From Bugula neritina (lineage: Eukaryota > Animalia > Bryozoa), in NCBI GenBank assembly GCA_964035545.1, contig OZ037772.1, forward strand, positions 4,964,233-5,028,232: DNA of 64,000 nucleotides. The letters are read 5' to 3'. A program made the position numbers and the translations under genes. The notes under the pieces are model-generated. The model did not search any database. It worked only from the letters and a program-made list of their open reading frames with translations, and was not told the DNA's origin. Shown piece after piece: positions 7,524-63,399 of this stretch. The first letter of the stretch is position 1; each line of letters starts with the position of its first letter.

Positions 7524-8254
7524 CAGTATAAAGAAAGTGATCTAGCTGTGTTAATACAAGGCATATGTTTCTCATATTCTGTGTGTATCATAAAAGTTGT
7601 GGAAAATGTTGAGTATTATAAAATGATAAGAACTTGAGTATTTACCAAGTAGATAGAGTCTACACAGTGACACAGGCACACAGTTTACTGAATACAGGAT
7701 ATTATAGAGTATGCAGTAGTAGGTAGGCGCGTAGCTAGGGTTGAATTCCTAAACATTATGTTATAATATAGTATATAATATATCATATTTTATGTTATGG
7801 TACAGCATTTAGGTTTGTCATACTTTTAGGTTCTTACACAAAAAAGATTGAATAAAATATGTACACAAAACTGTTTATTAAACAGAAAATAATTTTATTT
7901 AAGAAAACCACTATCTATATCTTTTATAAATTTACCAGAAGATTTAAAATAATGAGATGAATGGGCTTACATCACTACTATCTCGTATACCAGTCTATAA
8001 CCAAGTCTATAGACAAACAGACAAACTAGTTAATGTGGACGCACAGACAAAGTACTTACTGTTGACACACAGACAGACAACTTACTGTAGACACGGAGAC
8101 AGACAGTTTACTGTATCATTGATACCTAGAATATTTCATTTACCTTCTTTTGTAGATCATCTAATAATGGAGACACATAAATAGTTACAAAATAGAACAT
8201 CTTCAACTGCTACAGATAAAAATCAACATTCAATAAAGTGTAAAGAAACTAGAA

Positions 8255-8276
8255 ATGAGTCAATACCCATCTACAG
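8255..8276 (+). CDS. LRR gene, predicted first coding segment (MSQYPST+G) in exon 8156-8276
   Basis: Acceptor ccttcttttgtag before 8156 and donor CAG|GTATTC after 8276. ATG at 8255 has an in-frame upstream stop (8234-8236). The segment ends in phase 1, matching the phase-1 start of exon 8414. Confidence 0.5.
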
Positions 8277-8413
8277 GTATTCCACCATAACTATAGGTTT
8301 CTCTTTCGTTTATATTATATATTGCACATCTATGAAACGACTAAAACTATACTACCAACAAAACAGTTTGTCCAAAAATTCTTACACTGTTTACCTATAT
8401 CATATAATTTTAG

Positions 8414-8648
8414 ATACGTACAGTGTCTGGTTCAGACACTCTGGAGAAGATCTACTTGATACATCATTGGTATTGCGTCTAAACAACACAAGAAAATACA
8501 CCATAGATGATATAAAGGAAGAGGTTAAAGGTCACACAATCACCCACATGATAGTAGATGGAGCTCTACCAGATAATATTCATCTACTGGCTCCAGAGTT
8601 GATACACTTGAGTGTGAAGAATGTGAAATCTGTCTCTAACCTGTCTGA
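8414..8648 (+). CDS. LRR gene, N-terminal cap exon (DTYSVWFRH...LPDNIHLLAPELIHLSVKNVKSVSNLSD)
   Basis: Acceptor ttttag, open frame and perfect donor GA|GTAAGT in phase 2, which joins in frame to any cassette exon (GA+C = Asp, then MSNLKNL). The 3' end resembles a degenerate LRR. The following intron (9690-10350, 21030-21422) is homologous to inter-cassette introns. Confidence 0.75.
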
Positions 8649-11600
8649 GTAAGTATCAGGTTACTATTGAATATATATATATATAAGAATATTTCTAGTG
8701 GAGGTGATAACAAGCCCCAACGAGCTACCAATAGCCACTAAAAAACTAAGCTCCTAATAAAATTAACACGTAAGCTGAGTCTATATATAATAAAGTAATG
8801 TTTTTTGCCACATTTATATGATACTTTGTGTACAACTTTGTAATATATCAATCATCTGGGTCTGCTTTGGTGTGCCAGGCTTACATCTGGTCCGGGGTTT
8901 ATAAACTATATGAGAAATAGTAAATAATACAGCATATATAATTTTAGAGTCTAGACTCTTTATGTAGAATGTAGAATAACTCAATTTTAGACCAATTGTT
9001 GAGCTATCTTACAAAATTATTTTCAACTATTAGGTTACATAGCTTGATTATGCTATTCTAAAATATTTCTAAATATAAGCAGTTACAATATAGAGAATGC
9101 ATAAAATTTAACACAGTCATCTTTTCTGTTTTTATATTATTTATACTGTGCTGCAAACTTAATTCAAGTGTAATATATTTGTTTACCTTCATGTCTGAGA
9201 CTGTCAGAATACACCTAATTCATTATCAAACAACAAGTAGTTAATGCTGATCACTTATGCAGAAATAAGACATATTTAGGTTTGTGTGTTTGAAACAGTA
9301 GTTACTGCAATAATCTATCAAAGATAAGCTAGCAGCTAATATATGCAAGTTAAAACATGGTTCGGCTTAAAATAATGTTGACTCAACTGATAAAATGCAA
9401 AATTTTGGGTATGTAATACAAGAAAAATAATTGAGACTTTCAACCTTTTACTTGGAGGGGTTGTAAAAACTCTGTTAGTCAGAAAAATAGAAAGTTCCAG
9501 ATTTTTGAGATTATTCACTTATACCAGAACTTACCACTCTAATTCGAATGTAGAAGCAAAAAGTAACAAATAGCAATATATCATATGTGAGACTCCGCCC
9601 ACCTGTCAATTATAAATCAGAAGCTGTCTAAATGCACTGGAGTTGAAAATTAAAATAAATTAATAGTTAAACTGTGTATGAATATAAATAACATATGCTG
9701 GCTGGTTGTATAACAGTGTGAACAAACGCTGCGCAGGTGTCTAATATAACATGTTTACTTGAACATGTTTGATGTAAATTTTTGTTAAACTGTTAGATGA
9801 ACATTATTAAGTTTTTATTTTCTTTGCTTCAAGACAGTTATCAAATTATCATCACAACTCTTGATACCAATAATTTCATAAATTGTACCATAGAAAGCTG
9901 TATAGTATACCTATACTGTAATAGTTTTATGCTGCATGTGGAATGCAGAGTTGTAACATTACTGGGAGTTCATATTAAGTTGATGATACACATAAAACAT
10001 ACAATTACTCTTTGTAAAAATGAGAATGAGAAGATGAGTTTCCTAGTTAGATAATCTTAATTATAAATCTGCCTATTATAAAGTCTGTGCCTGTGCCCTC
10101 ACATCAGAACAATAACGAATACGATAATTATAATAGCAAATGTAATTAGAGAGTATTGTTACTGTGTATACAGCTCTGGTCGAACTCATCCTTCTGACCC
10201 TTTTTTGGACTGTAATATATTAGTGGAATGACTAGTCCTGAGTTTTGTTATAGGAAGCACGTTACATAAAATATAGATTATAACATAACATAATTTACTG
10301 AACAGTGAAAACATGCATGAGGGTCTGTCTAACAGGTCCACTGCCTACATATTGTAATAATTGTTATAAGTAGAAGCTCTCTGGTACGGAGTGCCAAATG
10401 GTCAAAAATTCGTTTATTATTACATTTCATATGCTTATAATAAAGTATCTAACCATATTCTCTCTCATATGCTCACAAAACGCTCTCATTGGTCTATAAT
10501 TTGCTCTTATACCTTTATTATTCATTATTCATTCCCATACCCATATTTCTCCTCCTTTTATGCTCATTATTCAGTCCCATACCTCCATTATGCACTCTCA
10601 TACCCTTATTATTTGCTCTGTTATAGACATTATTCACTCTCTTATGTTTATTATTCTTTCTCATACCCCTATTACTGTCTTGCTTTTACATCTGATTCTG
10701 ACTCACTAGTATTTGTGTACACGACACACTACTAAGCTCCATCCCATTTATCAAATCTGATTGGATAACTGCAATGACACCAAGAGTAATAATAAATGCT
10801 GGGTTTGTGTCTAGGTTTAGTTAGCCATTCTTCATTCATAAGTATCAGTCTAGGAGTGCACAACTTATACCAGCTAGATTCTCATCTAGATATTAACTTT
10901 TAAGCTAATAAATCACCGCTGGAAAATTTACGGATCGGTTGGGCTTGCGAGTTCCTATAATAACTATTCAAACAGAATAGTGTTCGCTTTAAACTTTTAG
11001 TTTGAGATAGAATTGCTCAAATTTTTATAAGTGGTTTACAGATAATTGTAGGTAAAAAATTTTATTAAATAAATACCTGACAAGCTAAATATTTGCTTTT
11101 TAATTCAATACCAAAATACTAAAATTTGCAGTTGGTTATTTTCACTAACTTCAAATGCAACAACCCATTATTAAGTTATGAGCTGCCAGTCGATTTTATC
11201 AGGTTCATAAGCGTAACTGCCTGCCTAGATTGACAAGAAGTTTTATACAAGTGTATTTTTTAGTGTAGTTAATTTTCCACCACACAGGGTAGTTAAGGGC
11301 ATCCTCACTAAGAATATCATAAATTTCTCTTAAAATGTAGTTTAGTTTCTTGAATAATATGGCTCTGTGGGTGGCATGCGAGTTGCCTACTTGCAATTGT
11401 TTAGCCTAAGATTGAACTACAACCAATAAGCAGCAACCTTCATTAGGGCTGCGTTATCTATCAACATTCTATTATGGGTGCTATATAAACAAAGTACAAA
11501 GCGAGCTATTCATTATAGCCTGCCAGCTAGCAAGCCTGTAATTAGTATGTACGCGCCAATATCTTCTCATCTCTACGTGCTCATTGAAGCGTGAAGTACT

Positions 11601-12232: not shown

Positions 12233-13689
12233 CTCGCCACACCTATCGAAAAGTACACTCTACGATTGATGCTTGTATGACAACATAATCTCAAAAAAAT
12301 TAAAGGAAATTAAAGTAAAATAAAATAAAAGATCAAAACAACACAGGAATGAGAGAACACAAAATATGTATTCCAAATGATGTCCATATTGTAACACGAT
12401 CGATCCGGGTCCGTCACAGGGTAGGGGGTCTCTCACCAAATAATGTAGGGTAGCATGAACTTAGTGAGAAGGAGAGGTACTGCTTCACACTCATCTAGTC
12501 GAAGCCAAGCGATGGGGGTCGAGGAGTCCCCAGAAGAATCAAGCGTGGCAAAAGAATCTCTCCAAAGAGGGAGAGAAGGAAAAGGGGGTTGGAGAGTACG
12601 AAGGAATCTCCCCAAAGGGGGGAGATGGAGGGGGGTTGACTGGTCTCTTCAATACCAACGTCTACCTCGCCGCCGTCGAATTCCCAAAAGGAGGAAAGGA
12701 AAGGCTTCTTCATCTTAACTTTTATTTTTACTTTTTACTTCATGCAGGAATCTTTAATATTACTTCTTCTTCTTATTATTATTTTATACGGTTTTATTAT
12801 TAGGATGTAGCCACAGGAGAGAAAAGAGAGGAGCTACTCTATCTATACCGGAACGTGATCACCAGGAGAGGAGAGGGAGGACTACTGTGTCAGTTGTCTC
12901 TGGCACTTCTTTTATGACGATCATCAGCACTGCTGTCATGTCGCTACAAGAATCTAGTCAAGCAGTCAGCATCTAGTCGAAAGTTGAGATGAATGATGTG
13001 ACTGCGCTATGCCAAAAGAAGGAATTTGGCCCCGCCATTCCAGTCTCACCTGCAGCAGAATGCCAGCAACTGTTGAAGGGGTTTGCACCTGTCAGTACGA
13101 CACCTCGACTGAGTCTCGCAATCACTAACCACTGATTAATAATTAAATCATGTAGTCGACCGCCCCACTCAAGTCGTCAGTGAATCACCTGACTTGGGAA
13201 ATCAACTTTATCGTTATGATAAAGCGAGACTGATTTAGGCTACCAGCTTGAATTCTATTTAAGTAATAGAATTATACTAGTAGACTTACCATAAGACAGC
13301 TCTGACTTTAGTCTGCTGCCCACTTAGGCTACGTAGTGCGCCAGCCTGCCAAGTACGTGTGTGCACGTTGGCAGTTGAATCAGAAAAGAACGCTTTTCGC
13401 AGTGAAAGTGATTGTATAATACCCCTTTCACTAGCGAGCTGACTTCGCTCTTTTCTTACCCCCGGTGGTGTTTTGTATTACACCACTGGGGTAGGCAACT
13501 CACAATTGCGTCTCCTTATATCTTGGAAATGCAACTCTCAATTGCTCGTCCCCCCAGATTTCTTTTATGATAGCTGATGGATTTTTTTCCACTGCATCAC
13601 ACAAGAAATCTTTTAAATAAGATGGAGGCGCCCTAGTGCGTTGCCTACGCTCCAACTGCACTGGGAATTTGCTACGACTGGTGACTCTT

Positions 13690-16600
13690 TCACCACGGGT
13701 GGTGTCGCCAGTACGGGGGGTCCACCAGTACGGGTGGTCCTCCCCCAGCTGCCTCTTCCTCATGATTTTGAGGAATTTCCATCTCATCCGGGACGATGGG
13801 CCTGTCGACCGGCTCCACAGGTGGTGGGGCCGGCTCTGACAGATCTTCAGGTGTGTCGACCTCCTCTTCCTGGGGTGGAGGAGGTTGGGGCTGGTCGGCT
13901 GACGCATCAGCCGCCCTGTCCTGGTCTGGCAGTATCTCCTCGATCTCTCGGTACGCCATGGGTCGCCCCCTCATAGGAGGGCGCCTAGCTGGCTCTAAGA
14001 GAGGAGGTGCTTGACCTGCCGCATCAGGACTTGCCCAGTGAGGTTTTAGCCGTGCCTCGTTCTGGATCGACACTTGTCCAGACCGTTCCACTTTGTATGT
14101 ATGGTTTGGCATTACCTCAATTACGCAGTAGGGACCTACGAACTTCGGCTGCAACTTGGCTGCCTGTCCGCGCCTGGGGCGATGACTGGTCATCCAGACC
14201 CAGTCCCCCACCTTGTATAAAGGTGGGTCGTCAGAGTCACCACTCCTGACCTGCCACTGCTGCTCACGTAGCACCTCGTGAGCCGTCCCCATGCGTTTTA
14301 CGAGCTTGTCCACGTAGTCGTGGACATTGCTCTCGGAAGTCGGAACATGATAGGTTACGTGCTCAGGAACCCTTGTTTCTCTCCCCAGCATGAGAAAATT
14401 AGGGGTCTCCAGTGTACTGGAGTGAGGGGTACTACGGTACGCTCGCATGATCTGCGGCAACACCAAGTCCTACTCTTCCTGGCTCCTACCGATAAGCAGG
14501 CTTCTCAGAGAGTCCCCTAGCATTCGGTTGTTCCGCTCCACAACCCCGTTCCTTTGCGGGTGATACAGGGTCGTCCGACTCTGGTTTACCCCCCACACTT
14601 TACAGAGATCGCTCATGAGTTGCGACTGAAACTGGGCACCTTGGTCAGAGTGTATCTGCTCCGGCAAGCCGAAATAGCAGAACACCTGCTGATCCAAGGC
14701 TCTGGCCACCGAGGGGGCCGACGCATCTGGAATAGCCAGTGCATCAGCCCACCGCGTGAAATGGTCAGTTAATACCAGTATCCAGTTATTACCTCTCGCT
14801 GTTGTGGGCATGGGGCCTACCAGATCGACAGCAACCACCTGCCACGGACGACCGGCATGGAGGCGACGCCTCCCTGCGGTCTCAGTGGGGCGGCCATGGT
14901 TGTACAGTAGTTCTTCTCAGGTGCCGACAGGGCCTTGCTATAGTAAGCCACCACCACCTCGCGACCATCTTGGACCTGCGATAGCACAGCCCCCACATTA
15001 TGGTTACTGGCATCAGTATCCAAAATGTACTCCTTCGCAGGGTCAGGATACGCCAAGATGGGTGCTTCCACCAGGCGATCCTTCAGGTGGTCAAATGCCT
15101 TCTGCTCAGCCTGCGTCCACTGCCATCGCACCCCTTTTGCGGTCAGCCGATTTAACGGCTGTGCAATTCCGGCGAAGTCTGGTATGTACTGACGATAGTA
15201 CCCTACCAGCCCCAGGAATGCCCGCAATTCAGAGAGGTCGACAGGGACGGCCCAGTCCCTCACAGCCCGTACCTTCTCGGGGTCGGCGGCGACCCCGTCT
15301 CGACTAACTACATGGCCCAGGTACTTAACCTCGCGTTGCAGTAATGCACACTTCGAGGGCTTTAGCTTCAGGCTCGCAGCTCGGAGTCTGTCGAACACCT
15401 CCCTGAGTCGACTGACATGTGTGTCGAAGTCGGGGGAGATGACGATGACATCATCGAGATAGATGGGCAGGGTCTTCCAGTGCAGTCCACTCAGGACCTG
15501 CTCCATGAGTCGCTGGAAGGTGGCTGGTGCGGACGTAAGTCCGAATGGCAACACCTTCCATTTTCAGAGCCCATCCCGCGTTATAAACGCGGCCTTGTCC
15601 TGTGCTTCAGGACTCAGGGGCACCTGCCAATACCCGCTTAGCAAGTCCAACGTGCTGAAGAACTTGCTACCAGCTAAGGCATCGAGCGACTCATCGATCC
15701 TCGGGAGAGGGTAAGCGTCCTGGATGGTCACGCTGTTCAGCCTGCGATAGTCAACGCAAAACCTCCAGCTACCATCCTTTTTCCGAACCAGGACGACTGG
15801 AGAACTCCAGGCCCCATGGCCTGGCTCAATCAGGTCCCGGTTCAGAAGGTCTTGCACCTGACGGCTCACTTCTCTCTCCTTCTCAGGACCTAACCGGCGG
15901 GTCGGCTGCCGAATTGGCGCAGTCCCCGCCGCCAGGGGTATCTCATGACAGACAGTCTTAGTCAGACCCATGTCATGGTCGCCGCAACTAAACACGTCCT
16001 TGTACTCAGAGAGTAGCCGCGCCATCACCAGGCGTTCTTGCTTGCTCTCACAGCCATCACAGGCATCCTCGTACAACTCTGCTACAAGTTCAGGCACCGG
16101 CCCCCTGCCGTCTCTGGTGGGTACTCCCCGGGCGTCGTCCGCTGTTTCCAGCGCGGGCCCTACATCCTCCTCTTGCACGGAGTGGAACTTTCCTACTAGA
16201 GACCCAGCCGGTAATTCTACCGGCTCCGTGAAAGGGCTTACGCACTGGACCAAGAACTCCCCCCGCTCATCCAGTCTATTCAGACTGTTAGCGAGCTGGA
16301 CGCCCCCCAGTGCACCTTCCACCACTCCGAGCTCGGAGATTTCCCTACAGTTCACTCTGCAGCGAACTGTAGCCCGGGAGCGCCCAGGTACAGTACAGCG
16401 CTGTACCACCTGCACTCCCCCCACCAAGGGTCGGCCAAATCGGTCGACAAAGGCCAGCTCACGCCCCGCCATCACTACTGCCGACTTGCTAAAGTCTATG
16501 TAGCACCTGTGTCGTTTCAGAAATGGCATGCCCAAGATGGCATCCTCCTTGAGTTGACTGACGATGAAGGTCTCACTGATCGTCTGATCACGAACTCTAC

Positions 16601-16997
16601 CAGTCAACTGGATTACCCCATAGAAAGGAATACACGACCCGTCCGCCAACGTGCCGTACTCTCCTTCATATGGTTCTAGGCTAGCCCTGTCCCTGGCACT
16701 GAGGGTGTCGAATAGACGTCGACTCAGTAGATTTGTGGCGCACCCAGTGTCCAACAGGAATGTGACAGCTTTGCCAGCAAGTTTGCCGGGGAGGAAATAG
16801 CTGCCTCCATATGGCTGAGCGCTCACTGAGCGATTTGTCTCTTGAGGCGACACCTCATGTGCATGGAGTTGGGGATGCACCTGTGCTTTCCGGTTGCGAG
16901 GGGGTCGTCGACGTTGCATGGGCGGGCAGGGTACGTCTCGGTCTCGCTCACACACGAGCGGCCGAGTGAATTCTCGGACTGATGCTCGTGTGGGCAA
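13690..16997 (-). pseudogene. pol: Gypsy-1 pol: protease, RT, partial RNase H, integrase
   Basis: LLDTG (protease); WRFCVDYRRLN, PFGL and YLDD (RT); LDTDAS (RNase H); VAVDLVGP, IHSDQG, VERNNR and a GPY motif (integrase). Nonsense codons at ~15564 and ~14470 and an internal deletion at ~14898. Confidence 0.93.
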
Positions 16998-17335
16998 CCG
17001 AGGAAAATCCCTGTTGTGCTCCCACTCCGTCGTTCACTCCCTCATCAAGCAAACCTTCAAAGCGGTTTTTGAGTGCCCAAGCCGGAGGTATTGGTGGGCC
17101 TTGCGGCCGACTCACTCTCCTTGGGGCTTGCCACTCTGGCGAAGGCGGCCTCCTCACCCGGTGGGGTGGGGGCCGTAGCCTCTGCCTTGGGGGGTTAAAC
17201 TGGGGCCTACGGTAGGCGGAAGTTATCGTGGGCCGTCGCTGTTTAACCGCCTCCCACTGCCGCGGTGGCATTTTCGTAGGAAGTGCCCACCACTACCACA
17301 GCCCCAGCATACGGTGCCGCGCCTGTCGTCGACAG

Positions 17336-18067
17336 CTACCAACGCTGGCGCAGTTGCCTGATCTCGGCTAGCAGTTCTCGAATAAAGCTCGTGGTCAAGC
17401 TAGTAGATTCGTCTGCTGCTGCCGCTGCGACCTGTACAGCTGTCTTCGCCGGCGACGTCGACACGTCGTCTGCCCCGACCTGCTGTACTGTCGCACCAGG
17501 TCGACTTGCACTGTCGGCTTGGAAATAGGCATTCTCAGGCCTTAGAGCTCTCTCCATAGTCTCAACTTCGGCCACCAGCAGATGCTGTTTCAGACCGAGG
17601 TTGTTAATAGACTGGAGGAATGCATCCAGTGCTAGGCTCTGTCGACTTTCGGCAGGCAAGTCGCTGTAAGCAACTTGTGCCAGTCGTTCGACTACGGTAG
17701 CATGCTCTCGCAGATTGGTCTTAGGATTTCTCTTAAGACTCTGCAGTTGCACGCGAGCATCTCGAGCAGTTAATCCAAACCGAGCTCGTAGTGCTTCAAA
17801 TATGTCACCGACATTCTGGCTTATGCCATAGGGTTTAGCCGGCCCTGTCAGACACAACCGCAGCTGGATCAGAGTAACCCTATTCGGCCATCCGCAGATG
17901 TCCGCCACATCACTAAACTCAGTGACGAATTGCTCCACATCCTCTTCCCCTGAGAAGATGGGAGCCCGCAAGTGGTACCTGTCCATAGGCAGCGCTGGGC
18001 CGCCTATGTGATCCTCTTCTATTGCTGCTGGCTCCTGTCTGGGCGCGTCGACGACTTCGTCGGCCAT
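17336..18067 (-). CDS. gag: Gypsy-1 gag-like ORF (243 aa)
   Basis: First ORF after the PBS; PIFSGEEDVEQF...W...LRLCLTGPAK capsid-like segment; homologous to decayed Gypsy-2 sequence at 26289-27030. Confidence 0.8.
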   Translation of the reverse strand: MADEVVDAPRQEPAAIEEDHIGGPALPMDRYHLRAPIFSGEEDVEQFVTEFSDVADICGWPNRVTLIQLRLCLTGPAKPYGISQNVGDIFEALRARFGLTARDARVQLQSLKRNPKTNLREHATVVERLAQVAYSDLPAESRQSLALDAFLQSINNLGLKQHLLVAEVETMERALRPENAYFQADSASRPGATVQQVGADDVSTSPAKTAVQVAAAAADESTSLTTSFIRELLAEIRQLRQRW

Positions 18068-18103
18068 CTTACTCTCTGGCTAGGGGTATTTGTATTAGGT
18101 GGA

Positions 18104-18121
18104 ATCCCACTGCTGCCACCA
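18104..18121 (-). promoter_or_regulatory. Gypsy-1 primer binding site, tRNA-Leu type
   Basis: Minus strand TGGTGGCAGCAGTGGGAT, 1 nt from the LTR end; complementary (1 mismatch) to the tRNA-Leu 3' end ATCCCACCGCTGCCA-CCA as recalled. Confidence 0.85.
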
Positions 18122-18122
18122 C

Positions 18123-18531
18123 TGTAGTGAATTTTGCCAGTTCACTGTTATTATGTGTGGGTCAACTTAAACAAAGCCACTGCACCAGGTTGTTTACGCT
18201 AAGATAACTTTATTATTTACACAAATACAAGAAGGTTATTTACTGCTAGCATGAATAGAAAACGTTTACATAATTAGTGAGCTTGAATAAACAACTACTT
18301 TAAATGAAGTCCCAAGCTGCTCTGCCGGCTAGCTACTCAACGCACTGCAACTACGAGTAGCTAGCTCCACCTGCTATCAATTAGTGTGACTGTCCTGATT
18401 GGTGGTTATTAGTGGTGCCACTGCTGTCCATAGCTACAATCCGACAGGGTCGAACTCACAATATAATAAACAATATAGAGTGAACCTTTTCGATTAATAC
18501 AATAATAATTGCACCACTAAAATCCATCGCA
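18123..18531 (-). repeat. Gypsy-1 5' LTR
   Basis: Adjacent to the PBS; followed by TSD CAGC. Confidence 0.95.
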
Positions 18532-21422: not shown

Positions 21423-21563
21423 CATGTCTAATCTGAAGAATCTAGAGACTCTTTTTATGTCGGGCAATAACTTCAGTGAAGGATTACCTGATGCAGTCAC
21501 ACTAATGACATCTCTAAGGGTGTTGCATATTAATCAGTTTAAACTGCCAACTCTACCTCAAAA
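21423..21563 (+). CDS. LRR cassette exon 1 (141 bp, phase 2-2): MSNLKNLETLFMSGNNFSEGLPDAVTLMTSLRVLHINQFKLPTLPQ
   Basis: tatag acceptor, gttagt donor, two LxxLxLxxNxL-type repeats. Confidence 0.9.
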
Positions 21564-21977: not shown

Positions 21978-22118
21978 CATGTCTAACTTGAAGAATCTGG
22001 AGACTCTTTTTATGCAAGAAAATAACTTCAGTGAAGGATTACCTGATGTAGTCACATCAATGACATCTCTAAGAGAGTTGAATATGAAGAACTGTAAACT
22101 ACCAACTCTACCTGAAAG
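21978..22118 (+). CDS. LRR cassette exon 2 (FMQE / NMKN)
   Basis: 141 bp, tatag / gtttgt, open frame. Confidence 0.9.
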
Positions 22119-22838: not shown

Positions 22839-23593
22839 CGCAGGATAGTTAAGGGCAACCTTTTAGCTGCAACTGCCTTGCTGAGATTTGCATTTGTAAT
22901 CATATAAGAATTCAGTACCAGTAAAATAAAATCTCACCTAATTGTGCTAGAGTCAAAATTTAAAAACTATGTTGTAGATCTTTTTTTTCCCCAGTGCAAG
23001 TTTTTTGGAAATTTCAATTTTCATTTTTTTTGCAAAGTTATAGACAAAAAACTGTTCAATTTTGGCCAATTTTGCCTGAAAAGCTGACTTTTCAGTTCCA
23101 GTAAAATATCTCAGCAGCAAAAGATGATATCTGAATAAAAATTGCACTGCTAGAATCCAGAGATATTTCTCCAGTGCAAGTTTTTCTTTTCTAATAACTT
23201 TGCTAGATTGCTCATAAAGTGGTGATTTATACACTGAAAATGCCATGTTTTTTCATAAGAAACTAGCAGCGCGCAGCACTTCACGCTTTAATGAGCACGA
23301 AAGGGATGAGAAGATATTGGCGAGTACATAATAATTACAGGCTTGCTAGCTGGCAGGCTAATATGAATAGCTCGCTTTGTACTTTGTTTATGTAGCACCT
23401 GTAATAGAATGTTGATAGATAACGCAGCCCTAATGAAGGTTGCTGCTTATTGGTTGTAGGTTATTCTTAGGCTAAACAATTACAAGTAGGCAACACGCAC
23501 GCCACCCGCAGAGCAATATTATTCAAGAACCTGAACTACATTTTGAGAGAAATTTAAGATATTCTTAGTGAGGATGCCCTTAACTATCCTGTG
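22839..23593 (-). mobile_element. CAC-TIR element copy 2 (complete, 755 bp)
   Basis: CGCAGGATAGTTAAGGGCA ... TGCCCTTAACTATCCTGTG; reverse complement of copy 1; no TSD because LTR lies on one side and pol on the other. Confidence 0.85.
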
Positions 23594-26500: not shown

Positions 26501-27071
26501 ACACGTCGTCGTCTGCTCCGACCTGCTGTATTGTCGTACCAGGCCGGCATACACTGTCGGCTTGGAAATAGGCATTTTCAAGCTTTAGAGCTCTCTTCAT
26601 AGTCTCAGTTGTTAATAGACTGGAGGAATGCATCCAGTGCTAAGCTCTGTCGACTATCAGCAGGCAAGTCGCCATAACCGACTTGTGCCAGTCGTTCGAC
26701 TACGGTCGCATGCTCTTGCAGGTTAGTCTTAAGATTTCTCCTAAGTCCCTGGAGTTGCACGCGAGCATCGAGCTTTTAATGCCTCAAATATGTCACCGAC
26801 ATCCTGGCTTATCTCATAGGGTTTAGCAGGCCCAGTCAGACATAACCGTAGCTGGATCAGAGTAACCCGATTCGGCCATCTGCAAATGGCCGCCATATCA
26901 CTGAATTCAGTGATGAATTGCTCCACATCTTTTTTTTTCTGAGAAGATGGGAGCCCGCAAGTGGTACCTGTCTATAGGCAGCGCTGGGCCGCCTATGTTA
27001 TCCTCCTCCATCGCTACCATCGTCGGCCATCTTCTTTCTACTCCCTGGCTAGGAGCATTTGTATAAGCGTG

Positions 27072-27089
27072 ATCCCACCGCTGCCACCA
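27072..27089 (-). promoter_or_regulatory. Gypsy-2 primer binding site, tRNA-Leu type
   Basis: Plus strand ATCCCACCGCTGCCACCA matches the 3' 18 nt of tRNA-Leu + CCA as recalled; 1 nt from the LTR start at 27091. Confidence 0.88.
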
Positions 27090-38338: not shown

Positions 38339-38340
38339 AT

Positions 38341-39939: not shown

Positions 39940-40012
<73 letters not shown>
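39940..40012. repeat. (TA)n microsatellite
   Basis: Near-perfect TA run. Confidence 0.97.
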
Positions 40013-40014
<2 letters not shown>

Positions 40015-51106: not shown

Positions 51107-51247
51107 CATGTCTAATCTGAAGAATCTGGAGACTCTTGATATATCATGGAATAACTTCAGCGAAGGATTACCTGATGTAGTCACATCAATGACATCTCTA
51201 AGAGAAATGAATATTAGTTTCTGTGAACTACTAACTCTACCTGAAAG
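51107..51247 (+). CDS. LRR cassette exon 8 (DISW / NISF)
   Basis: 141 bp, tatag / gttagt. Confidence 0.9.
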
Positions 51248-52517: not shown

Positions 52518-52658
52518 CATGTCTAATCTGAAGAATCTGGAGACTCTCGCGGTATCACGGAATAACTTCAGTGAAGGGTTACCTGATGTAGTCACATCAA
52601 TGACATTACTAAGAGAGTTGAATATTAGTTCCTGTGAACTACAAACTCTACCTGAGTG
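52518..52658 (+). CDS. LRR cassette exon 9 (AVSR / NISS), missed by the ORF track
   Basis: 141 bp, tatag / gttagt; MSNLKNLETLAVSRNNFSEGLPDVVTSMTLLRELNISSCELQTLPE. Confidence 0.9.
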
Positions 52659-55060: not shown

Positions 55061-55699
55061 GCAAATGTAACTTGAGATATAGGAGTACGCTACTGTGTAT
55101 ACAGGTCTAGTTCAACTTCCCCTTCTGAGCCATCCCCCCTCATATATATGAGTGCATGGAGTAGCTAGTCCTGAGTTCATTCAGGAAGCACATTACATGA
55201 TATATAAATTTAAGCATAAAACAATTCGTAAACGAGCACGAAGAACAGTAAAAACATGCATGAGCATCTGTCCAACATGTCCCCTGCCTACATACTTGTG
55301 ACCCTTAAACCCGTTGTAGATAAACTTATTTTAAACATAAATATAAGTTATAAGAAGAAAAAAATCACTTTTTAAATGTTTTTTTATATAAATATATTAC
55401 AAAACATGGAGCCTGCAAAAATTATGGAAACTTCACTGTGTAATCATTTATAAGAACTTAGAACACAGTAATTTGAAATAACTGATATTGTTGCCCCTGG
55501 CCCAAGCTGAAGTTTAAAATATGTGGATCCCACCATGAAAGGCTCTGTTTTGAAAGCCTTAGCTATGTAGCTATGAAAAGGTAGAAAACCCGTCTAATAT
55601 ATGAGCTGGATACTTGTGTGACACAGTAGATGTGCACAGCCATAATCTACTACAATTTTACTAAATGATGTTTCAATTAGTATATTATGTTTACTATAG

Positions 55700-55840
55700 C
55701 ATTTCTAATCTGAAAAATCTGGAGACTCTTGATATAACAGGGAATAACTTCAGTAAAGGATTACCTGATGTATGGACATCAATGACATCTCTAAGGACGT
55801 TGGATATGAAAAACTGTGAACTACCAACTCTACCTGAGAG
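55700..55840 (+). CDS. LRR cassette exon 10 (DITG / DMKN)
   Basis: 141 bp, tatag / gttggt. Confidence 0.9.
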
Positions 55841-56451
55841 GTTGGTAAAAGCAACTGAATATGAAATACAAATAAACTGTTTCTTTTTATTTAGGATTTT
55901 GCATGGATGTATTCTTCTAGACTTATATTTTTTTATTGCTAAATATCTTGTGAAAATCTCTCAAGTCTGTTGCAATTTTTTGCAATATTATTACATAAAT
56001 ATGCAAATAAATATATGCTAATAAAGCAATGGTATGTATATGAAATTATAACATGTGGTTAAATGGAATATATTATATGTAGCAAACGTTACAACATTTT
56101 AATTTCATATGCTTGAAATGAGTAAATTAGGTAAATTATAAGTTGACTTTATTAGCCTTTTTTTAAAAAATGAAAAGCATAGGTTTCAAAATGTAATATC
56201 CTGTAAACTAAAATCAGACCTTGATTCGGCAATATAATGTATATAATTGATATTTAAATAGGTTATACTGTCTTTTGCTATGCTATAAGCAGTAAAAAAC
56301 TTTAATGAACGTGTTATAAACAAGTAATCTGTATTTTGAAGTATAAAACAAAAACGAATTATTTCAGCAAATTACCTGTAGCTATATATGTTAGATGTTA
56401 GATGGTTGTACTATACTATTTCATATCTCAACTAGTATATGTTTACTATAG

Positions 56452-56592
56452 CATGTCTAATCTTAAGAATCTGGAGACTCTTGATACGTCAGAGAACAAC
56501 TTTATTAGAGGATTACCTGATGTATTCACATCAATTACATCTTTAAGAAATTTGAATATGCGATACTGTGCGCTACCAACTTTACCTGAGAG
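56452..56592 (+). CDS. LRR cassette exon 11 (DTSE / NMRY)
   Basis: 141 bp, tatag / gttagt. Confidence 0.9.
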
Positions 56593-57312
56593 GTTAGTAA
56601 CAGCAACAATTATATATATGAAAGAAAAATAAATCAACTGAATATGAAATACAAATGAACTGTTTCTCTAGGATTTTGCACGCTTGCATTTTCTAGACTC
56701 ATATTTTTTGTTGCTAAATATTTTCTGAAAATTTCTCAAAACTGTTAAACATCTTGCTATTATAGTTAGTATATTACATAAAATACGCAAATAAGTGTAC
56801 AATATTTAAGAGATGGCTGTGTACAATATTATAAAATGTGGTCAACTGGATTTATAGTATATATTAGAAACTTTACAATAGTATAACTTCGTATCCTTGA
56901 AATGGGTAAAAGTTAGCAAGTTGAGTTTATTGGTTTTCTTTCATAGAAAATAATAAACTCACAATTCAATATGTAATATCCTGCAGACTAAAATCAGACT
57001 TTGATCTGGCAATATGATGTATATGATTGATATTTAATTGCCAAATACTTTGTCAAAATTTCTCAAATCTATTAGGTACAAAATCTTGCTATAATTATTA
57101 CATAAGATAATAAGTTATCTAAAATACAAATAAACTGTTTCTCTAGGATTTTGAATGCCTGCATTTTTCTAGGCTATGATATTTTTTGTTGCTAAATATT
57201 TTGTGAAAATTTCTCAAAACTGTTAAAAAATATTGCTATAGTTACTATATTATATAAAATGCGCAAATAAGTGTACAATAATAAGTATGCTGTGTATATA
57301 ATATTAGAAAAT

Positions 57313-57562
57313 GTGACCCAGGCAGTCAGAAAAGCACTTTGTGACAAAATTCACATTTTCAGTTAATGCTTGATTCTTATTTGCCTCTTTATACTGATTG
57401 ATTTGCTGTTTAAATTTTTGAAATCGGACTACTATTATAATAGTGGTCCGATTTCAAAAATTTAAAGTGCAAATCAATCAGTATAAAGAGGCAAATACGA
57501 ATCAAGCATTAACTGAAAATGTGAATTTTGTCACAAAGTGCTTTTCTGACTGCCTGGGTCAC
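57313..57562. mobile_element. 250-bp near-perfect palindromic MITE (Sola1-like target)
   Basis: GTGACCCAGGCAGTCAG...CTGACTGCCTGGGTCAC, ~125-bp arms with no spacer; 4-bp TSD AAAT (AWWT); absent from the paralogous module at ~56835. Confidence 0.85.
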
Positions 57563-58455
57563 AAATGTAGTTAACTGAATTTATATAATATTTTAAAAAC
57601 TTTACAATATTTTAATTCCGTATCCTTAAAATGGGAAAAAGTTAGTAAGCTAAGTTTATGAGCTTTTTCTTGAAAAATATGCAGCCCAAGCTTTATTATG
57701 TATTATCCTGCAGACTAAAATGAGACTTTGATCTGTCATTATAAATTCTTCAACTCTATTATATTGCTGCAAAATTGTATGTAATATACAAGTAAAGATA
57801 TCATGCTATAGAACATAGCCTGCAGTAATTATGGAAGTTCCACTATATGTGATGATTCATATAAGAACTTAGAATGAAGTAATTTGAAAAACTGATTTTC
57901 TGGCCCTTAGTCCAAGCTGAAGTTTATGAAATGAGTAAATTAGGTAAATTACAAGTTGACTTTACTAGCCTTTTCTTGAAAAATAAAAAGTGGAAGTTTT
58001 AAAATGTCATATCCTGCTGACTAAAATCAGACTTTAATCTGGCAATATAATGTATAATTGATATTTAAATAACTCATACAGTCTTTTGTTATACTATAAG
58101 CAGTAACACACTTTAAAGTTTTAGAAACAATTATTCTGTATTTTGAAGTACGACATAAAAGTGAATTATTTTCAAAAATAGCAGTAACGATAGAAAATAT
58201 TATTATATATATACACTAATAAAATTTAAGTTTTATAATTTGTATTCAACTTAAGGTCTTGAAAAAAAGAACTCATGCAGTGTATTTCACACACATATGT
58301 GATATTTATATCTAATAATGTCTTTTATTCAAACTTCATTTTTTATTGGATGAAATTTACAAATCAATAAACAACTTTATGCTAGAACTCCGTTTCCTTT
58401 GCTTTAGATGGTTGTAATACTATATGTTGTCTCAACTGGTATATGTTTACTATAG

Positions 58456-58573
58456 CATGTCTAATCTGAAAAATCTGAAAACTCATTGAAGGATTACCTG
58501 ATGTAGTCACATCAATGACATCTCTAAGAGAAATGAATATTAGTTCCTGTAAACTACTAACTCTACCTGAGAG
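58456..58573 (+). pseudogene. LRR cassette exon 12, defective (118 bp)
   Basis: Net 23 nt missing over the first variable patch; reads MSNLKNLKTH*; donor gttatt lacks +5G. Confidence 0.88.
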
Positions 58574-59828
58574 GTTATTAAATATGTATTAACTAAAATG
58601 TTCATTAGTGTGAAGGATATAATTATGCATTAGATGTACCTATTTTTTATTAAAGTTATCTACATATTCTGAAGTTAGGCTTGGAAATTTCTAGAAGCAT
58701 TTTGACTCGCTTTCTACAGTTTCTAAGTGCAATATGTTGGGTTCACAGCAGAATCACAAGTATTAACTGTGTTAAACATTTTCCACTGAGAGTTGACCAC
58801 CAACTTTTCAGCTGACACTCTAACAATTACACTACAATAACTACTGGGTAATCTTAACATTTCATTCAACCAATTCTTCTGAACTCCACTGGCCCCCTTT
58901 CTACTCAATAACTATTAGGCTTTCCTGGCTTCTCAACTCGATTTGTATACAAACATACTACATGGCTGGCTATAGCAGTGTAAACAAACGCTGTACAGTT
59001 GTCCAATATAACATATCATATATAATATAACATGCTTATTTGAACATGTTTGATGTAAATTTTTAGCAAACTATTAGATGAACAATAATAAGTTTTTTTT
59101 ATTTTCTTTATTTAAGGAAAGTTGTCAAATTGTAATAACAATTCTTGATACAGTTATAAAATCTGTGACGGTCTCCTCCCACCAAAAAAATAACAAATAC
59201 AATCATTATAATAGCAAATGTAACTTGAGATAGGAGTACGCTAGTGTGTATACAGGTCTAGTTCAACTCACCCTTCTGAGCCATCCCCCTTATATATATG
59301 AGTAGAATAGCTAGTCCTGAGTTTATTCAGGAAGCACATTACACTGAATATGGATTATAACATAACATAATTTATAAACGGGCACGAAGAACAGTAAAAA
59401 CATACACAAGCGTCTGTCCAGCAGGTCCCCTGCCTACATACTTGTGTCCCTCAAACACGTTACAGATAAACTTATTTTTAAACATAAATATAAGTTATAA
59501 GAGGAGAAAAATCTTCTCTTAAATGATTTTTTTACATAAATATATTACAAAACATGGAGCCTGCAATATTTATGGAAACTATACACACTGTGTAATAATT
59601 CTTAAGAACTTAGAATAAAGTAATTTGAAATAACTGATAATGTGGCCCATAGCCAATAAGCTGAAGTTCAAAATATGTGGCCCCCGCTATGAAATGCTCT
59701 GTTTTGAAAGCTCTCAGTATTAAAAGGTTGAAAACCTTTGGTCTAATACATGCAGTAGATTTTACCAGCCATAAGCTACTACAATATTACTAAATGATGT
59801 TTCAATTAGTATATTATGTTTACTATAG

Positions 59829-59969
59829 CATGTCTAATCTGGAGAATCTGGAGACTCTTAATATAGCAAGAAATAACTTCAGTGAAGGATTGCCTGATGT
59901 ATTCACATCAATGACATCTCTAAGAAAGTTGCATATGCGGTACTGTAAACTACCAACTCTACCTGAGAG
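59829..59969 (+). CDS. LRR cassette exon 13 (NIAR / HMRY)
   Basis: 141 bp, tatag / gttagt. Confidence 0.9.
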
Positions 59970-60445
59970 GTTAGTAAAAAAAGAAACTTTGTATAAAAGG
60001 CTCATATATAATTTTCATCTATAGCATATGACTCTTATAAGATTCGACTGCATGTATTTTATAACTGCCACTTCTGTTGCTAGATGTTTTGCAATAAAAT
60101 CCTAAACCTATTGAATTGTTTTAAAATTAGATACAGTTTGCAAATAAGTTTATGCTAACAAAGATATACATACATATAAATATCATGAGATGTTATAGTC
60201 ATGGAAAGCATAAGACATGTTACAATATTTTAATTTCTCCCGTTTGAAGTGAGCAAAAGTTAGAGAGTTAAGTTCATTATAAAGTTTTTACTTGGGAAAT
60301 AAACAGTTCAAGCTTCATTGTGTAATATCTTGCAGACTAAAATCAATTGAGTTGAGTTAGCAACATATAATACTAAATAAGTTTTTTGTTATATATATAT
60401 TTTGTATTATATAAGTTGTATTATATAATCTATTGTCTGCTATAG

Positions 60446-60586
60446 CATGTCTAACCTGAAGAATCTGGAGACTCTTGATTTGTCACATAATAACTTCAGT
60501 GTAAGACTACCTGCTGTAGTCACATCAATGACATTACTAAGAGAGTTGAATATTAGTTTCTGTAAACTACCAACTCTACCTGAGAG
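60446..60586 (+). CDS. LRR cassette exon 14 (DLSH / NISF), missed by the ORF track
   Basis: 141 bp, tatag / gttagt; MSNLKNLETLDLSHNNFSVRLPAVVTSMTLLRELNISFCKLPTLPE. Confidence 0.9.
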
Positions 60587-62352
60587 GTTAGTAAAAATCT
60601 ATCAACTAAAATGTTCATTAGTGTGAAGGATCCAATTCTGCATTAAATGCACCTATTTTTTTATTAAAGTTATCTACATACTCTGAAGGTAAGCTTGGAA
60701 CGTTCTAGAAGCATTTTGACTAGCTTTGTAGAGTTTCTAAGTGCAATATGTTGGGTTCACAGCAGAATCACAAGTACCAACTGTGTTAAACATCTTCCAC
60801 TGAGAGTTAACCACCAACTTTTCAGCTGACACTCTAACAATTACACTACAATAACTACTGGGTAATCTTAACATCTCATTCAACCAGCTCTTTTAAACTT
60901 CACTGGCCCCCTTTCTACTCAATAACTATTAGGGTTCCCTGGCTTCTCATCTCGCTTTGCATACAAACATGCTGCATGGCTGGCTATAGCAGTGTGAACA
61001 AACGCTGTACAGTTGTCCAATATAACATCTCATATTTAATTTAACATGCTTACTTGAACATGTTTGATGTAAATTTTTAGTAAACTGTCACATGAACAAT
61101 AATAAATTTTCATTTTCTTTATTTAAGGGAAAATGTCAAATTGTTATAACAATTCTTGATACAGTTATAAAATCTGTGATCGTCCCCTCTCACCAGAATA
61201 ATAGCTAATACAATGATTATAATAGCAAATATAACTTGAGATAAGAGTACGCTACTGTGTATACAGGTCTAGTTCAACTCACCCTTCTGAGCCATCCCCC
61301 TTATATATTTGTGTGGAGTAGCTAGTCCTGAGTTCATCCAGGAAGCGCATTACATGATATATAGATTTAAGCATAAAATAATTCGTAAACGAGCACGAAG
61401 AACAGTAAAAACATGCATGAGGGTCTGTCCAACATGTCCCCTGCCTACATACTTGTGACCCTCCAACGCATTACAGATAAACTTATTTTTAAACATAAAT
61501 TTGAGTTATGAAGAGAGAAAAATCACCTTTTAGATGTTTTTTTATATAAATATAATATTACAAAACATGGAGCCTGCAATAATTATTGAAACTCCACTGT
61601 GTAATGATTCTTAAGAACTTAGAATAAAGTAATTTGAAATAACTGATAATGTGGTCCCTAGCCCAAGGTGAAGTTTAAAATATGTGGCCCTCACCATGGA
61701 ATGCTCTGTTTCAAAAGCCTTAGCTATGAAAAGGTAGGAAACCCTTGGTCTAATACATGAGCTGCCTACTTGTATGACACAGCAGATGTGCACAGCCATA
61801 ATCTACTACAATATTACTAAAGGAGTAAAAACTTATTTATGATTTGACTTTTTTAGCTGTTTCTTGAAAAATAAGAAGCTCAAGCTTCAATATGTCATAT
61901 ACTGCAGACTAAAATCAGACTCTGATCCGGCAATATATAAATTATAATATATGATTCATATTTAATTAAGTCATACAGTATTTTGTTATATTATAAGCTG
62001 TGATAAACTTTACAAATTTAGAAACAACTATAAATCTGCATTTTGAAGTATAAAACAAAAATGGATTATTTTCAAAAACTACCAAAAATGATAGAAAATA
62101 TTGTCGCATATACTAATAAAATATAAATTATATAACTGGTATTCAGCTTAAAGTCTTGAAAAGAAGAACTTATGCAGTATATTTCACACACATATGTGAG
62201 ATTTATATCTAATAATGTCTTTTATTCCAACTTCATTTTTCATTAAATAAAATTTATATATCAATAAAAAACTTTACGCTAGAATTACATTGCTGTAGCT
62301 TAAGATGGTTGTATTACTATATGATGTCTCAACTGGTATATGTTTACTATAG

Positions 62353-62493
62353 CATGTCTAATCTGAAGAATCTGGAGACTCTTGATATGTCACATAATAA
62401 CTTCAGTGAAGGATTACCTGATGTATTCACATCAATGACATCTCTAAGAGAGTTGAATATTAGTTCCTGTGAACTACCAAATCTACCTGGGAG
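62353..62493 (+). CDS. LRR cassette exon 15 (DMSH / NISS)
   Basis: 141 bp, tatag / gttagt. Confidence 0.9.
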
Positions 62494-63258
62494 GTTAGTA
62501 AGAATGTATTAAATAAAATGTTCATTAGTGTGAAGGATATAATTCTTCAATAGAAGTACTTTTTTTTTTATTAAAATTATCTACAGGTTTTAAAGTTCTA
62601 TAGTTTTACAAATTTTCTGCGTTTCAAAAGTGCAATATATTAGGTATTATAGAATCACAAGTACCAACTGTGTTACATACTTCCCATTGAAAGTCAACCA
62701 CCGGCTTGCCAGCTGACGCACTAACTATTACACTACAAGGGTAATCCTAAAACTCCATGCAACCAGTTATTCTAAACTCTGCTGGTTCCCTTACTACTCA
62801 TTCAGTTTAGGCTTCCCGGGCCTCTCAACTCTCTTGGCGTACTACCAAAATGCTATACTAAATGTGAAAGAGTTTGCTAACAATTACACATGGGTCGTTA
62901 GGTAATCTCAACACCACACCAAGCTGTTCACATGTGCATTCAGCTCCCTGCTACCATAAAGCTATTCACGTGCACTAACCGTCATGATGTAAGAACTTCA
63001 ATTACAGAAGGTTCTAATTTTACATGCCCCTCCTTTCAAATGGAAGGATATCACAATTACTAGACATCAAATTTTTATAAGCGCATTACAGAGATTACTT
63101 GATTAGCATGTGAATAAAATCTTAGTTGTATATATTATATGCTTCACTTGGTCTAATACATGAGCTGCCTACTTGTATGACACAGCAGATGTGCACACCC
63201 AAAATCTACTACAATATTACTAAATGATGTTTCAATTACTATATTATGTTTACTATAG

Positions 63259-63399
63259 CATGTCTAATCTGGAGAATCTGGAGACTCTTGATATGTCAGG
63301 GAATAAGTTCAGTGAAGGATTACCTAATGTATTCACATCAATGACATCTCTAAGAACGTTGAATATGCAGATCTGTGAACTACCAACTCTACCTGAGAG
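63259..63399 (+). CDS. LRR cassette exon 16 (DMSG / NMQI)
   Basis: 141 bp, tatag / gttagt; the downstream module runs off the window, so the array probably continues. Confidence 0.9.

Follow-up and report, generated by a model that had tools for sequence, protein, structure and literature searches.

An array of 141-bp leucine-rich repeat exons in the bryozoan Bugula neritina encodes the LRR arm of a single predicted LRR-Roc-COR-caspase gene

Is a tandem array of uniform leucine-rich repeat (LRR) exons in the genome of the bryozoan Bugula neritina a receptor locus that diversifies by the choice of cassettes, or does it belong to a conventional gene that varies in the germline? The window analysed here, 64,000 nucleotides of contig OZ037772.1 (assembly GCA_964035545.1, positions 4,964,233 to 5,028,232, forward strand), had been singled out by a first-pass annotation of the sequence as holding such a locus. 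We find that its 141-bp exons are genuine and that they encode the long LRR arm, presumably the sensor, of one LRR-Roc-COR-caspase gene of about 71 kb. The diversity demonstrated is that of the germline, with about 100 paralogues that differ in their numbers of cassettes.

An open-frame scan and tblastn with cassette peptides recovered exactly the 15 intact exons that had been claimed for the window (AG, 141 nt, GT), all on the + strand, at 21423-21563, 21978-22118, 28807-28947, 29772-29912, 30686-30826, 31471-31611, 34019-34159, 51107-51247, 52518-52658, 55700-55840, 56452-56592, 59829-59969, 60446-60586, 62353-62493 and 63259-63399, the last in the window. Each consists of 1 nt, 46 codons and 2 nt (phase 2-2) and encodes a 24+23-residue LRR pair with the pattern MSNLKNLETLDMSxNNFSEGLPDVFTSMTSLRELNMxxCxLPTLPE, found in all 15 (self E-values 1e-26 to 1e-28). 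The acceptors (intron ..tttactatag, exon CATGTC) and the donors (exon GAGAG, intron gttagt) are near-identical, and weak or regulated exons are not apparent in the tblastn alignment. The annotation had counted at least 16 copies; the sixteenth is a frameshifted cassette of 118 bp (58456-58573, + strand) with a 23-bp internal deletion and intact AG and GT. The array runs beyond the window, with five further intact cassettes (L006:181-321, 1085-1225, 3628-3768, 4532-4672 and 5464-5604) and one frameshifted copy of 142 bp (L006:2005-2146). The whole array therefore comprises 20 intact and two frameshifted cassettes.

Upstream, sequence reading identifies a putative first coding exon (8255-8276, + strand; ATG, 22 nt, phase-1 donor) and an N-cap exon of 235 nt (8414-8648, + strand), a family-specific head exon that ends in ..CTGTCTGA followed by gtaagt. 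This is the single upstream N-cap exon proposed earlier, and its phase-2 donor does fit the cassettes. Spliced together, the two exons give an open frame that starts with MSQYPSTD... The predicted N-terminus, MSQYPSTDTYSVWFRHSGEDLL..., is not hydrophobic, and the translated first two exons contain neither a signal-peptide-like hydrophobic start nor any cysteine.

The nature of the gene is revealed at the 3′ end of the array. There, the cassettes terminate in a phase-matched exon encoding LRRs, a Roc GTPase and a putative COR domain (L007:918-2892), followed by caspase p20/p10 exons (L007:3703-3903, 4005-4376, about 4873-5031 and 5268-5618), and it is this arrangement that makes the whole one gene of about 71 kb. 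The Roc exon opens with LRRs (Pfam LRR_8/LRR_4 matches), which lie N-terminal to Roc and in the same frame in the conceptual splice. The Roc domain was detected by Pfam PF08477 on L007:745-2892 (30.8 bits, cut-off 27), and its translation shows the motifs GNTMAGKTS, DMGGQ and THKD. For COR, Pfam returned nothing on the query at E<=0.01; beyond Roc, this exon codes for about 470 further residues. The Roc-COR exon aligns with the B. neritina Roc-COR-caspase protein KAF6039231 (38% identity over 616 aa), itself matched by COR-A at 30.5 bits, below its cut-off of 35.3, and by COR-B at 22.1 bits, and several homologues carry a precomputed PF16095. Finally, Peptidase_C14 (PF00656) matches each of two downstream exons at 40 bits. 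The caspase translations hold ..GSHG.. and ..VIQACS.., the His/Cys dyad, and later exons hold GSLFI and KLYLFPG. The C-terminal module thus reads as a caspase p20 with its dyad plus a p10. The gene reaches about 71 kb because its introns accommodate LINE-like ORFs, a MITE-like repeat and two Ty3/gypsy-like retroelements.

Conceptual splicing of the intact exons yields an open frame of 1684 aa without a stop; the N-cap exon, each of the 20 cassettes, the Roc-COR frame (716 aa) and the caspase exons, which have the SHG and QAC motifs, all read open. Since the cassettes, the N-cap donor and the Roc acceptor are all of phase 2, any subset of cassettes can be joined in frame, as had been proposed; even the N-cap exon spliced straight to the Roc exon leaves the frame open. 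Inclusion of the 118-bp copy, on the other hand, brings a premature stop at residue 613. Both frameshifted cassettes keep intact splice sites, so that some skipping, nonsense-mediated decay or a null allele must occur. In the 142-bp copy, the frame is shifted by a 1-bp insertion within a run of A, possibly introduced by the assembly.

The gene is not alone. The genome search for paralogous arrays that had been suggested returned 112 six-frame matches to the N-cap exon, each heading a cassette array, at least 877 candidate cassettes and, among 529 candidates, at least 62 exons scored as Roc-COR; most Roc-COR exons are followed by caspase exons after 1-3 kb. The family numbers roughly 100 genes. 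Among 18 paralogues sampled by tblastn, each has 1-11 cassettes, 141 bp long or, in other subfamilies, 144 bp, and many are compact, their introns measuring about 132 nt. Among named proteins, the best relatives come from the bryozoans Bugula and Watersipora; in the Watersipora RefSeq proteins, which NCBI names 'MFHAS1 homolog', the same 47-aa units follow one another without interruption, and the nearest ESM-Atlas clusters are likewise MFHAS1-like. A search of 5.8 billion proteins with the open frame around cassette 55700 gave 14 matches: the six inspected are genomic exon read-throughs from a JGI metagenome, the remaining eight likewise have about the length of a single exon, and no spliced protein fragment was recognised among them. 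An exon-exon junction pattern had no match in the B. neritina genome, which indicates that there are no processed retrocopies, and none in a collection of metagenome contigs, that is, no spliced contigs. NACHT gave a single weak match in the same genome. Our literature searches found no published description of a ROCO-caspase family in bryozoans.

How do the cassettes vary? Their pairwise identity averages 85.5% (range 72-100%), and that of the flanking 80 nt of intron is 67-73%. Entropy peaks at cassette positions 11-14, 33, 35-38 and 40. At the x-positions of LxxLxLxxN, defined a priori and predicted to line the concave face, dN is 0.42 and dN/dS 1.37, and at the remaining positions 0.095 and 0.60, values that come from pairwise, non-independent comparisons of short sequences. 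None of 5000 random codon sets matched the dN of the x-positions, and 581 of 5000 random 10-codon sets reached their dN/dS ratio. The scaffold positions (dN/dS 0.60), many of them invariant residues, are constrained, and the pairwise dN/dS above 1 suggests that diversifying selection acts on the predicted concave-face residues. Moreover, for many cassettes the exon and its two flanks, upstream and downstream, differ in their nearest neighbours, and such mosaic flanks imply that the units have been shuffled. The array also contains long near-identical direct repeats, with intron copies 91-98% identical; cassette 63259-63399 is 100% identical to L006:1085-1225 (65085), as are 250 of 250 nt upstream. 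The proposal of a candidate invertebrate recognition locus whose LRR surface varies cassette by cassette is supported by this dN/dS above 1 on the concave face and by the mosaic units.

We consider it probable that the cassettes arose by tandem duplication of internal exons within one gene (about 71 kb) and are spliced serially by default, and that their diversity is made in the germline. The gene runs from the ATG exon and the N-cap exon through the 20 intact cassettes, with the two frameshifted ones among them, to the LRR-Roc-COR exon and the caspase p20/p10 exons. Assuming serial joining, the intact cassettes would form a cytosolic solenoid of about 40 LRRs, presumably the sensor arm of a ROCO protein that uses its GTPase as a switch and has its own caspase as effector. 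Ligand binding may then lead to GTPase-controlled dimerisation or oligomerisation and to activation of the caspase by proximity, in the manner of an inflammasome. Germline diversity would arise from duplication of exons and blocks, from unequal crossing-over or gene conversion between near-identical units, from diversifying selection on concave-face residues and from the birth and death of about 100 paralogues. Phase symmetry makes gain, loss and skipping of a cassette frame-neutral, which explains why such arrays expand and why two frameshifted copies are tolerable, if they are skipped. A solenoid of 40 LRRs is however unusually long, the sampled paralogues having at most 11 cassettes, and this speaks against serial splicing by default, as do the two frameshifted cassettes that retain their splice sites.

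Alternatively, in line with the alternative splicing that the first-pass annotation had considered, exon skipping, regulated or stochastic, may let this single gene make many isoforms that stay in frame and differ in the cassettes they contain. The uniform phase 2 from the N-cap donor to the Roc acceptor would permit it, a functional product requires that the two frameshifted cassettes be omitted despite their intact splice sites, and there are precedents in Ectocarpus ROCO genes, which have up to nine LRR splice variants (PMC11378527), and, as a small-scale human case, in NLRP3, where the exonic modularity of the LRRs is the precondition for splicing (PMC6642158). RNA contigs from four runs of four studies were mapped to 55600-60700 (5.1 kb). 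Those of runs X1, X3 and X5 (three studies) cover the cassettes in this segment and X6 covers one cassette; the coverage includes 55700-55840, with its flanking introns empty, 56452-56592, also exon-only, 59829-59969 and 60446-60586, and the sole other covered segment is a dispersed repeat. This restriction of coverage to exons counts in favour of the gene model above. At 31-60 nt, most of the contigs have two possible positions, and they do not resolve cassette order, and most are 95-99%, not >=99%, identical to the locus and may derive from paralogues. Coverage over 58456-58573 in particular is not assignable to that copy, because over its 3′ 86 nt it shares 97% identity with cassette 51107 and 96% with a cassette of a sister gene.

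A single contig with a GT..AG junction maps from 55838 to 60444 and would pass over three cassettes, but its shorter side is only 28 nt. The last 28 nt of cassette 55700 match the end of 63259 at 27 of 28 positions, and cassettes 60446 and 64181 do not differ in their first 34 nt; owing to these near-identical ends, the junction fits a sequential 63259 to 64181 joint equally well. Several backward joints show cross-mapping from paralogues, one donor variant being found solely at C1:31742068. Furthermore, no docking/selector complementarity is conserved between 8649-9900 and the 300 nt on each side of the cassettes, the best reverse-complement 10-12-mers being AT-rich words common to at most 5 of 20 cassettes, and the splice sites are uniform. 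Lastly, what distinguishes the RefSeq isoforms X1, X2 and X3 of a Watersipora LRR-Roc-COR-caspase homologue is a linker segment of 28 aa and a truncation of the caspase; their LRR units show no difference. We regard skipping on this scale as unlikely.

The broader proposition that zooids or cells express different in-frame subsets of the 20 cassettes, whether by skipping or by recombination between intron repeats, appears decidedly unlikely to us. If true, this ROCO-caspase gene and its family of about 100 would constitute a combinatorial cytosolic receptor repertoire, directed at pathogens or serving allorecognition, and an animal counterpart, neither NLR nor Ig, of anticipatory receptor diversification.

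That this copy is decaying or null, in a family under birth-and-death evolution, with an array that is a relic homogenised by gene conversion and no functional product, is quite improbable. Frameshifts affect two of the 22 cassettes, mobile elements lie in the introns, the Roc-COR exon has stops in three of the five closest paralogues and one neighbouring N-cap copy has stops as well; the imperfect identity of the RNA contigs would also agree with transcription of paralogues rather than of this copy. Against this, the N-cap, the 20 cassettes, Roc-COR and the caspase are open over the full 1684 aa, the cassette scaffold is under constraint, and one of the two frameshifts is the insertion in an A-run that could be an assembly error. 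Somatic DNA rearrangement to cell-specific cassette sets, by VLR-like copy choice or by recombination between intron repeats, is highly improbable: the identity upstream of 63259 and 65085 and the intron copies offer good recombination substrates, and the idea has also been raised for Ectocarpus ROCO genes (PMC3341825), but the germline gene is already complete and open, its cassettes lie in a single orientation with canonical splice sites, unlike VLR donor cassettes, it has no signal peptide or cysteine-rich caps, and germline unequal crossing-over accounts for the mosaicism.

Serial splicing of a germline-diversified array remains the reading we favour. The first-pass annotation had named three parallels. 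That with the brown-algal LRR-ROCO genes of Ectocarpus and Saccharina (PMC3341825, PMC11378527) is exact in kind, since the gene proves to be a ROCO. The two share the LRR-Roc-COR order, tandem uniform symmetric phase-2 LRR exons, an expanded and clustered family with mosaic or shuffled units, positive selection on the concave face, and cytosolic products, proposed as immune receptors. They differ in that the algal exon holds one LRR (72 bp) and the Bugula exon two (141 bp, 144 bp in other subfamilies), and in that the Bugula host is an animal, with a caspase fused after COR and a larger family (about 100 head exons). LRR splice variants are reported for the algal genes, whereas the Bugula array is known from genomic exons and short RNA contigs.

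In the second parallel, lamprey and hagfish VLRs also have LRR cassettes that vary on the concave face, but their germline genes lack parts that are supplied somatically by flanking cassettes, which have no splice sites and lie in both orientations, and their products are secreted or membrane-anchored with Cys-rich caps. The comparison fails structurally because the Bugula gene is complete, its cassettes being normal exons that lie on one strand and have canonical splice sites, and because it has cysteine-free N-terminal exons and no signal peptide; the product is cytosolic with a C-terminal Roc-COR-caspase. Arthropod Dscam1 also has tandem arrays of duplicated same-phase exons, but there the choice is mutually exclusive and directed by docking/selector RNA pairing, for which we found no complementarity near the cassettes, and the Bugula solenoid repeats are additive.

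Two further systems bear comparison. Vertebrate NLR and ribonuclease-inhibitor-type LRRs (PMC6642158) also have an integral LRR unit per exon in constant phase, open to in-frame duplication and skipping, and NLRs are cytosolic sensors upstream of a caspase, a role that the Bugula protein may share. In Bugula, however, the switch is a Roc-COR GTPase and not a NACHT ATPase, and the caspase is in the same polypeptide instead of being recruited. Metazoan ROCO proteins of the MFHAS1/MASL1 type have N-terminal LRRs followed by Roc and COR as well, but no fused caspase has been described in them. Genes of this type occur in one or a few copies and are not known to have hypervariable cassette arrays.

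We conclude that this gene is an animal equivalent, fused to a caspase, of the exon-shuffled ROCO genes of brown algae. As far as we know, ROCO proteins with exon-shuffled LRRs have been proposed as immune receptors only in brown algae; in Bugula, an animal, the same genomic design appears independently, at a larger scale and with a direct link to a caspase. The locus is well suited to testing whether the use of symmetric LRR exon arrays is confined to evolutionary time or extends to the life of the individual. If the near-absence of NACHT holds, cytosolic surveillance or colony allorecognition in bryozoans may rest on Roc-COR switches instead of NLRs, with sensor, switch and executioner in one chain.

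The window is AT-rich (about 30% GC) and eukaryotic in character, with two GC-rich blocks within it. When the window was scanned mechanically for AG, 141 nt in an open frame and GT, 15 plus-strand exons with a common 46-residue peptide emerged, and tblastn with the cassette peptides found in the window the same 15 exons and one partial copy, nothing more. All 15 intact cassettes share one layout (1 nt, 46 codons, 2 nt), with acceptors ..tttactatag/CATGTC and donors GAGAG/gttagt (the slash marks the exon border), and their head-to-tail joining gives a 47-residue unit composed of a 24-residue and a 23-residue LRR. Upstream lie an ATG exon of 22 nt (8255-8276, plus strand) and, after it, an N-cap exon of 235 nt that ends with a phase-2 donor (8414-8648, plus strand). 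The 16th copy (58456-58573, plus strand, 118 bp) keeps both splice sites and is frameshifted, with a 23-bp internal deletion. The first-pass annotation, which had described 15 intact 141-bp exons and an N-cap exon with a phase-2 donor, is accurate on these points.

We also examined a further 30 kb downstream of the window (G000:C8:4964233-5028232, in the 216-Mb assembly). Five further intact cassettes are found there, together with a 142-bp copy that has a 1-bp insertion in an A-run. The last cassettes are followed by an intron of ~5.3 kb containing reverse-transcriptase-like ORFs, and by a 716-codon frame on the plus strand (L007:745-2892, in a segment fetched downstream), whose exon starts at L007:918 with an acceptor in the cassette phase. 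This frame encodes two or three more LRRs, a Roc GTPase (Pfam 30.8 bits for a cut-off of 27; P-loop, DxxGQ and THKD motifs visible) and then about 470 residues. The Roc-COR exon is 38% identical over 616 aa to a Bugula neritina protein carrying Roc, COR-A, COR-B and Peptidase_C14, and a caspase p20/p10, in which SHG and QAC motifs occur, is predicted from four additional exons. When the ATG and N-cap exons, 20 intact cassettes and the Roc-COR exon are spliced conceptually, the result is 1684 residues with no stop. The array is thus predicted to supply the LRR arm of a single ~71-kb LRR-Roc-COR-caspase gene. No signal peptide was found in the predicted protein, which is therefore presumably cytosolic.

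The introns of the array also harbour other elements. The two GC-rich blocks (12500-18200 and 23500-27300, minus strand; 55-57% GC against 30% in the host) are intronic, fragmented copies of Ty3/gypsy-like LTR retroelements, with aspartyl protease, RVT_1, RNase H and integrase SH3 matches and interrupted reading frames. A 399-aa ORF with no Pfam match (38572-39771, plus strand) lies in a 17-kb intron and has ..SYSCMPN.. motifs in common with a 417-aa ORF found ~29 kb past the window (L008, ~8700-10000); it is probably an uncharacterised repeat-element protein.

Named relatives of the gene are all bryozoan (Bugula neritina and Watersipora subatra, the latter labelled 'MFHAS1 homolog' or 'lrrA-like' by NCBI). 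The closest unnamed matches, at 85% identity, come from JGI metagenome contigs, and two of the listed runs bear the label 'symbiont metagenome'. Paralogous arrays, which the first-pass annotation had proposed looking for, were found in the genome: the N-cap exon has 112 matches, the Roc-COR exon at least 62 scored matches among 529 candidates, and the cassette at least 877 candidates, clustered on contigs C1, C3, C4, C5, C6 and C8. Five of the scored Roc-COR matches are close paralogues (77-89% identity), three of them with stops. Most Roc-COR exons have caspase exons 1-3 kb downstream (by eye, ~30 of the first 35), and many of the at least 177 Peptidase_C14 matches in the genome lie beside Roc-COR exons. 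Eighteen sampled paralogues have 1-11 cassettes each, counted within the fetched stretch, and with 20-22 the present gene stands at the upper extreme; other subfamilies have a cassette of 144 bp and introns of ~132 nt. Two paralogous neighbours are located 90-170 kb upstream (G000:C8:4798585-4886148): one combines an intact Roc-COR exon (89% identity) with an N-cap copy that carries stops, the other an intact N-cap (83%) with a Roc-COR exon that has three stops. Stops distributed in this way are a birth-and-death pattern.

Twelve of the 46 positions of the cassette peptide are invariant. Entropy is highest at positions 11-14 and 33, 35-38 and 40, which established LRR structure assigns to the x residues of the LxxLxLxxN/C motif and the neighbouring loop, lining the concave face. 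The a priori x-positions have a dN of 0.42 and a dS of 0.31 (dN/dS 1.37), compared with 0.095 and 0.159 (dN/dS 0.60) at the other cassette codons; among 5000 random 10-codon sets, none was as high as the x-position dN and 581 were as high as the dN/dS ratio. Cassette exons are 85.5% identical, as against 67-73% for the adjoining introns, and for many cassettes the best-matching partner changes from upstream flank to exon to downstream flank. The cassettes starting at 63259 and 65085 are identical, as are the 250 nt upstream of each (window 63009-63399 and L006:835-1225), which suggests that a ~1.8-kb block was duplicated very recently, or that the assembly collapsed or expanded in the array. 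Together, these features are the mark of duplication of exons and blocks in the germline, of unequal crossing-over or conversion, and of diversifying selection.

Contigs of four RNA runs from four studies were placed on window 55600-60700. For X1, X3 and X5, depth falls on cassette exons, and X6 gave one contig only, on cassette 60446. Non-cassette depth is appreciable only at 57310-57650, with X5 also reaching ~1-2.5 in three adjacent intron bins; 57310-57570 is a ~260-bp dispersed repeat (MITE-like) with both-strand matches and at least 25 genome copies at 94-99% identity. Such a profile is that of RNA, and it shows that cassettes are transcribed with borders as predicted, whether they belong to this gene or to near-identical paralogues.

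The first-pass annotation had proposed cassette choice through alternative splicing and/or DNA rearrangement; we consider the splicing version rather unlikely. The frame is likewise open when the N-cap is spliced straight to the Roc exon, and one GT..AG joint (55838 to 60444, shorter side 28 nt) seemingly leaps three cassettes. The RNA contigs are 31-60 nt long, with two placements possible for most, and this joint is ambiguous: because cassette ends are almost identical, the sequential junction 63259 to 64181 would account for it just as well. Backward joints are cross-mapping, the donor variant of one being present only in a paralogue at C1:31742068. Spliced fragments of the array were found neither as proteins in a large protein collection, nor as processed retrocopies in the genome, nor as spliced contigs among metagenome contigs. 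The proposed parallel with Dscam fails on docking/selector pairing, the only feature testable, no such complementarity being found at the locus; it also fails on logic, because solenoid repeats are additive and do not substitute for each other. In the Watersipora LRR-Roc-COR-caspase homologue (XP_067941711-13), three RefSeq isoforms have LRR units that are alike and differ in a 28-aa linker and the caspase end. In one isoform of this other cheilostome, the caspase is truncated just past the QAC motif, and it could be a regulatory, caspase-dead form.

Less probable still is that the gene is a decaying copy. Including the broken copies in the conceptual splice introduces a stop at residue 613 or 924, and RNA depth on the frameshifted copy cannot be attributed to that copy, given a 3' part with 96-97% identity to two other cassettes; the splice through intact cassettes is open. 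Somatic rearrangement of the array, for which lamprey VLR cassettes had been invoked, is very improbable, as the parallel fails on structure: here the germline gene is complete, with same-strand exons and canonical splice sites, and the product has neither signal peptide nor Cys caps.

The third suggested likeness, to brown-algal ROCO genes, holds in nearly all testable respects. In Ectocarpus and Saccharina, these genes have 72-bp phase-2 exons with one LRR per exon, and the duplication, exchange and diversifying-selection signature seen here matches that described there (PMC3341825, PMC11378527), whereas the cassette of this gene carries two LRRs per exon. In its exonic modularity the gene follows a principle known from human NLR genes (PMC6642158). 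Systems of this kind, with symmetric LRR exon arrays and with exon-shuffled ROCO candidate receptors, are already known. Literature searches found no description of an animal ROCO-caspase cassette family with these features and, as far as they show, novelty lies in the animal host, the two-LRR cassette, the scale and the caspase fusion.

Our default reading, which we consider probable, is a germline-diversified, in-order spliced LRR-Roc-COR-caspase sensor, with ~100 germline paralogues, and not somatic choice, supplying the breadth of the repertoire. The data themselves show the anatomy of the gene, the size of its family, the pattern of variable sites, the mosaicism and RNA coverage confined to exons; the working that follows is inferred. 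Intact cassettes would be joined in genomic order into a long LRR solenoid, whose concave face would bind a variable ligand; in a colonial animal, a pathogen or a conspecific could be its source. Binding would be passed on via the Roc-COR GTPase, a module that works by dimerisation in other ROCO proteins. The fused caspase would then be activated through proximity, leading to cell death or substrate processing, and sensor, switch and effector would be combined in a single chain. An exon-wise six-frame search, indicative only, gave a single weak match to the NACHT domain (PF05729) genome-wide (33 bits, C6:312551). NLRs may be nearly absent from the genome of Bugula neritina, with ROCO-caspase genes taking their place.
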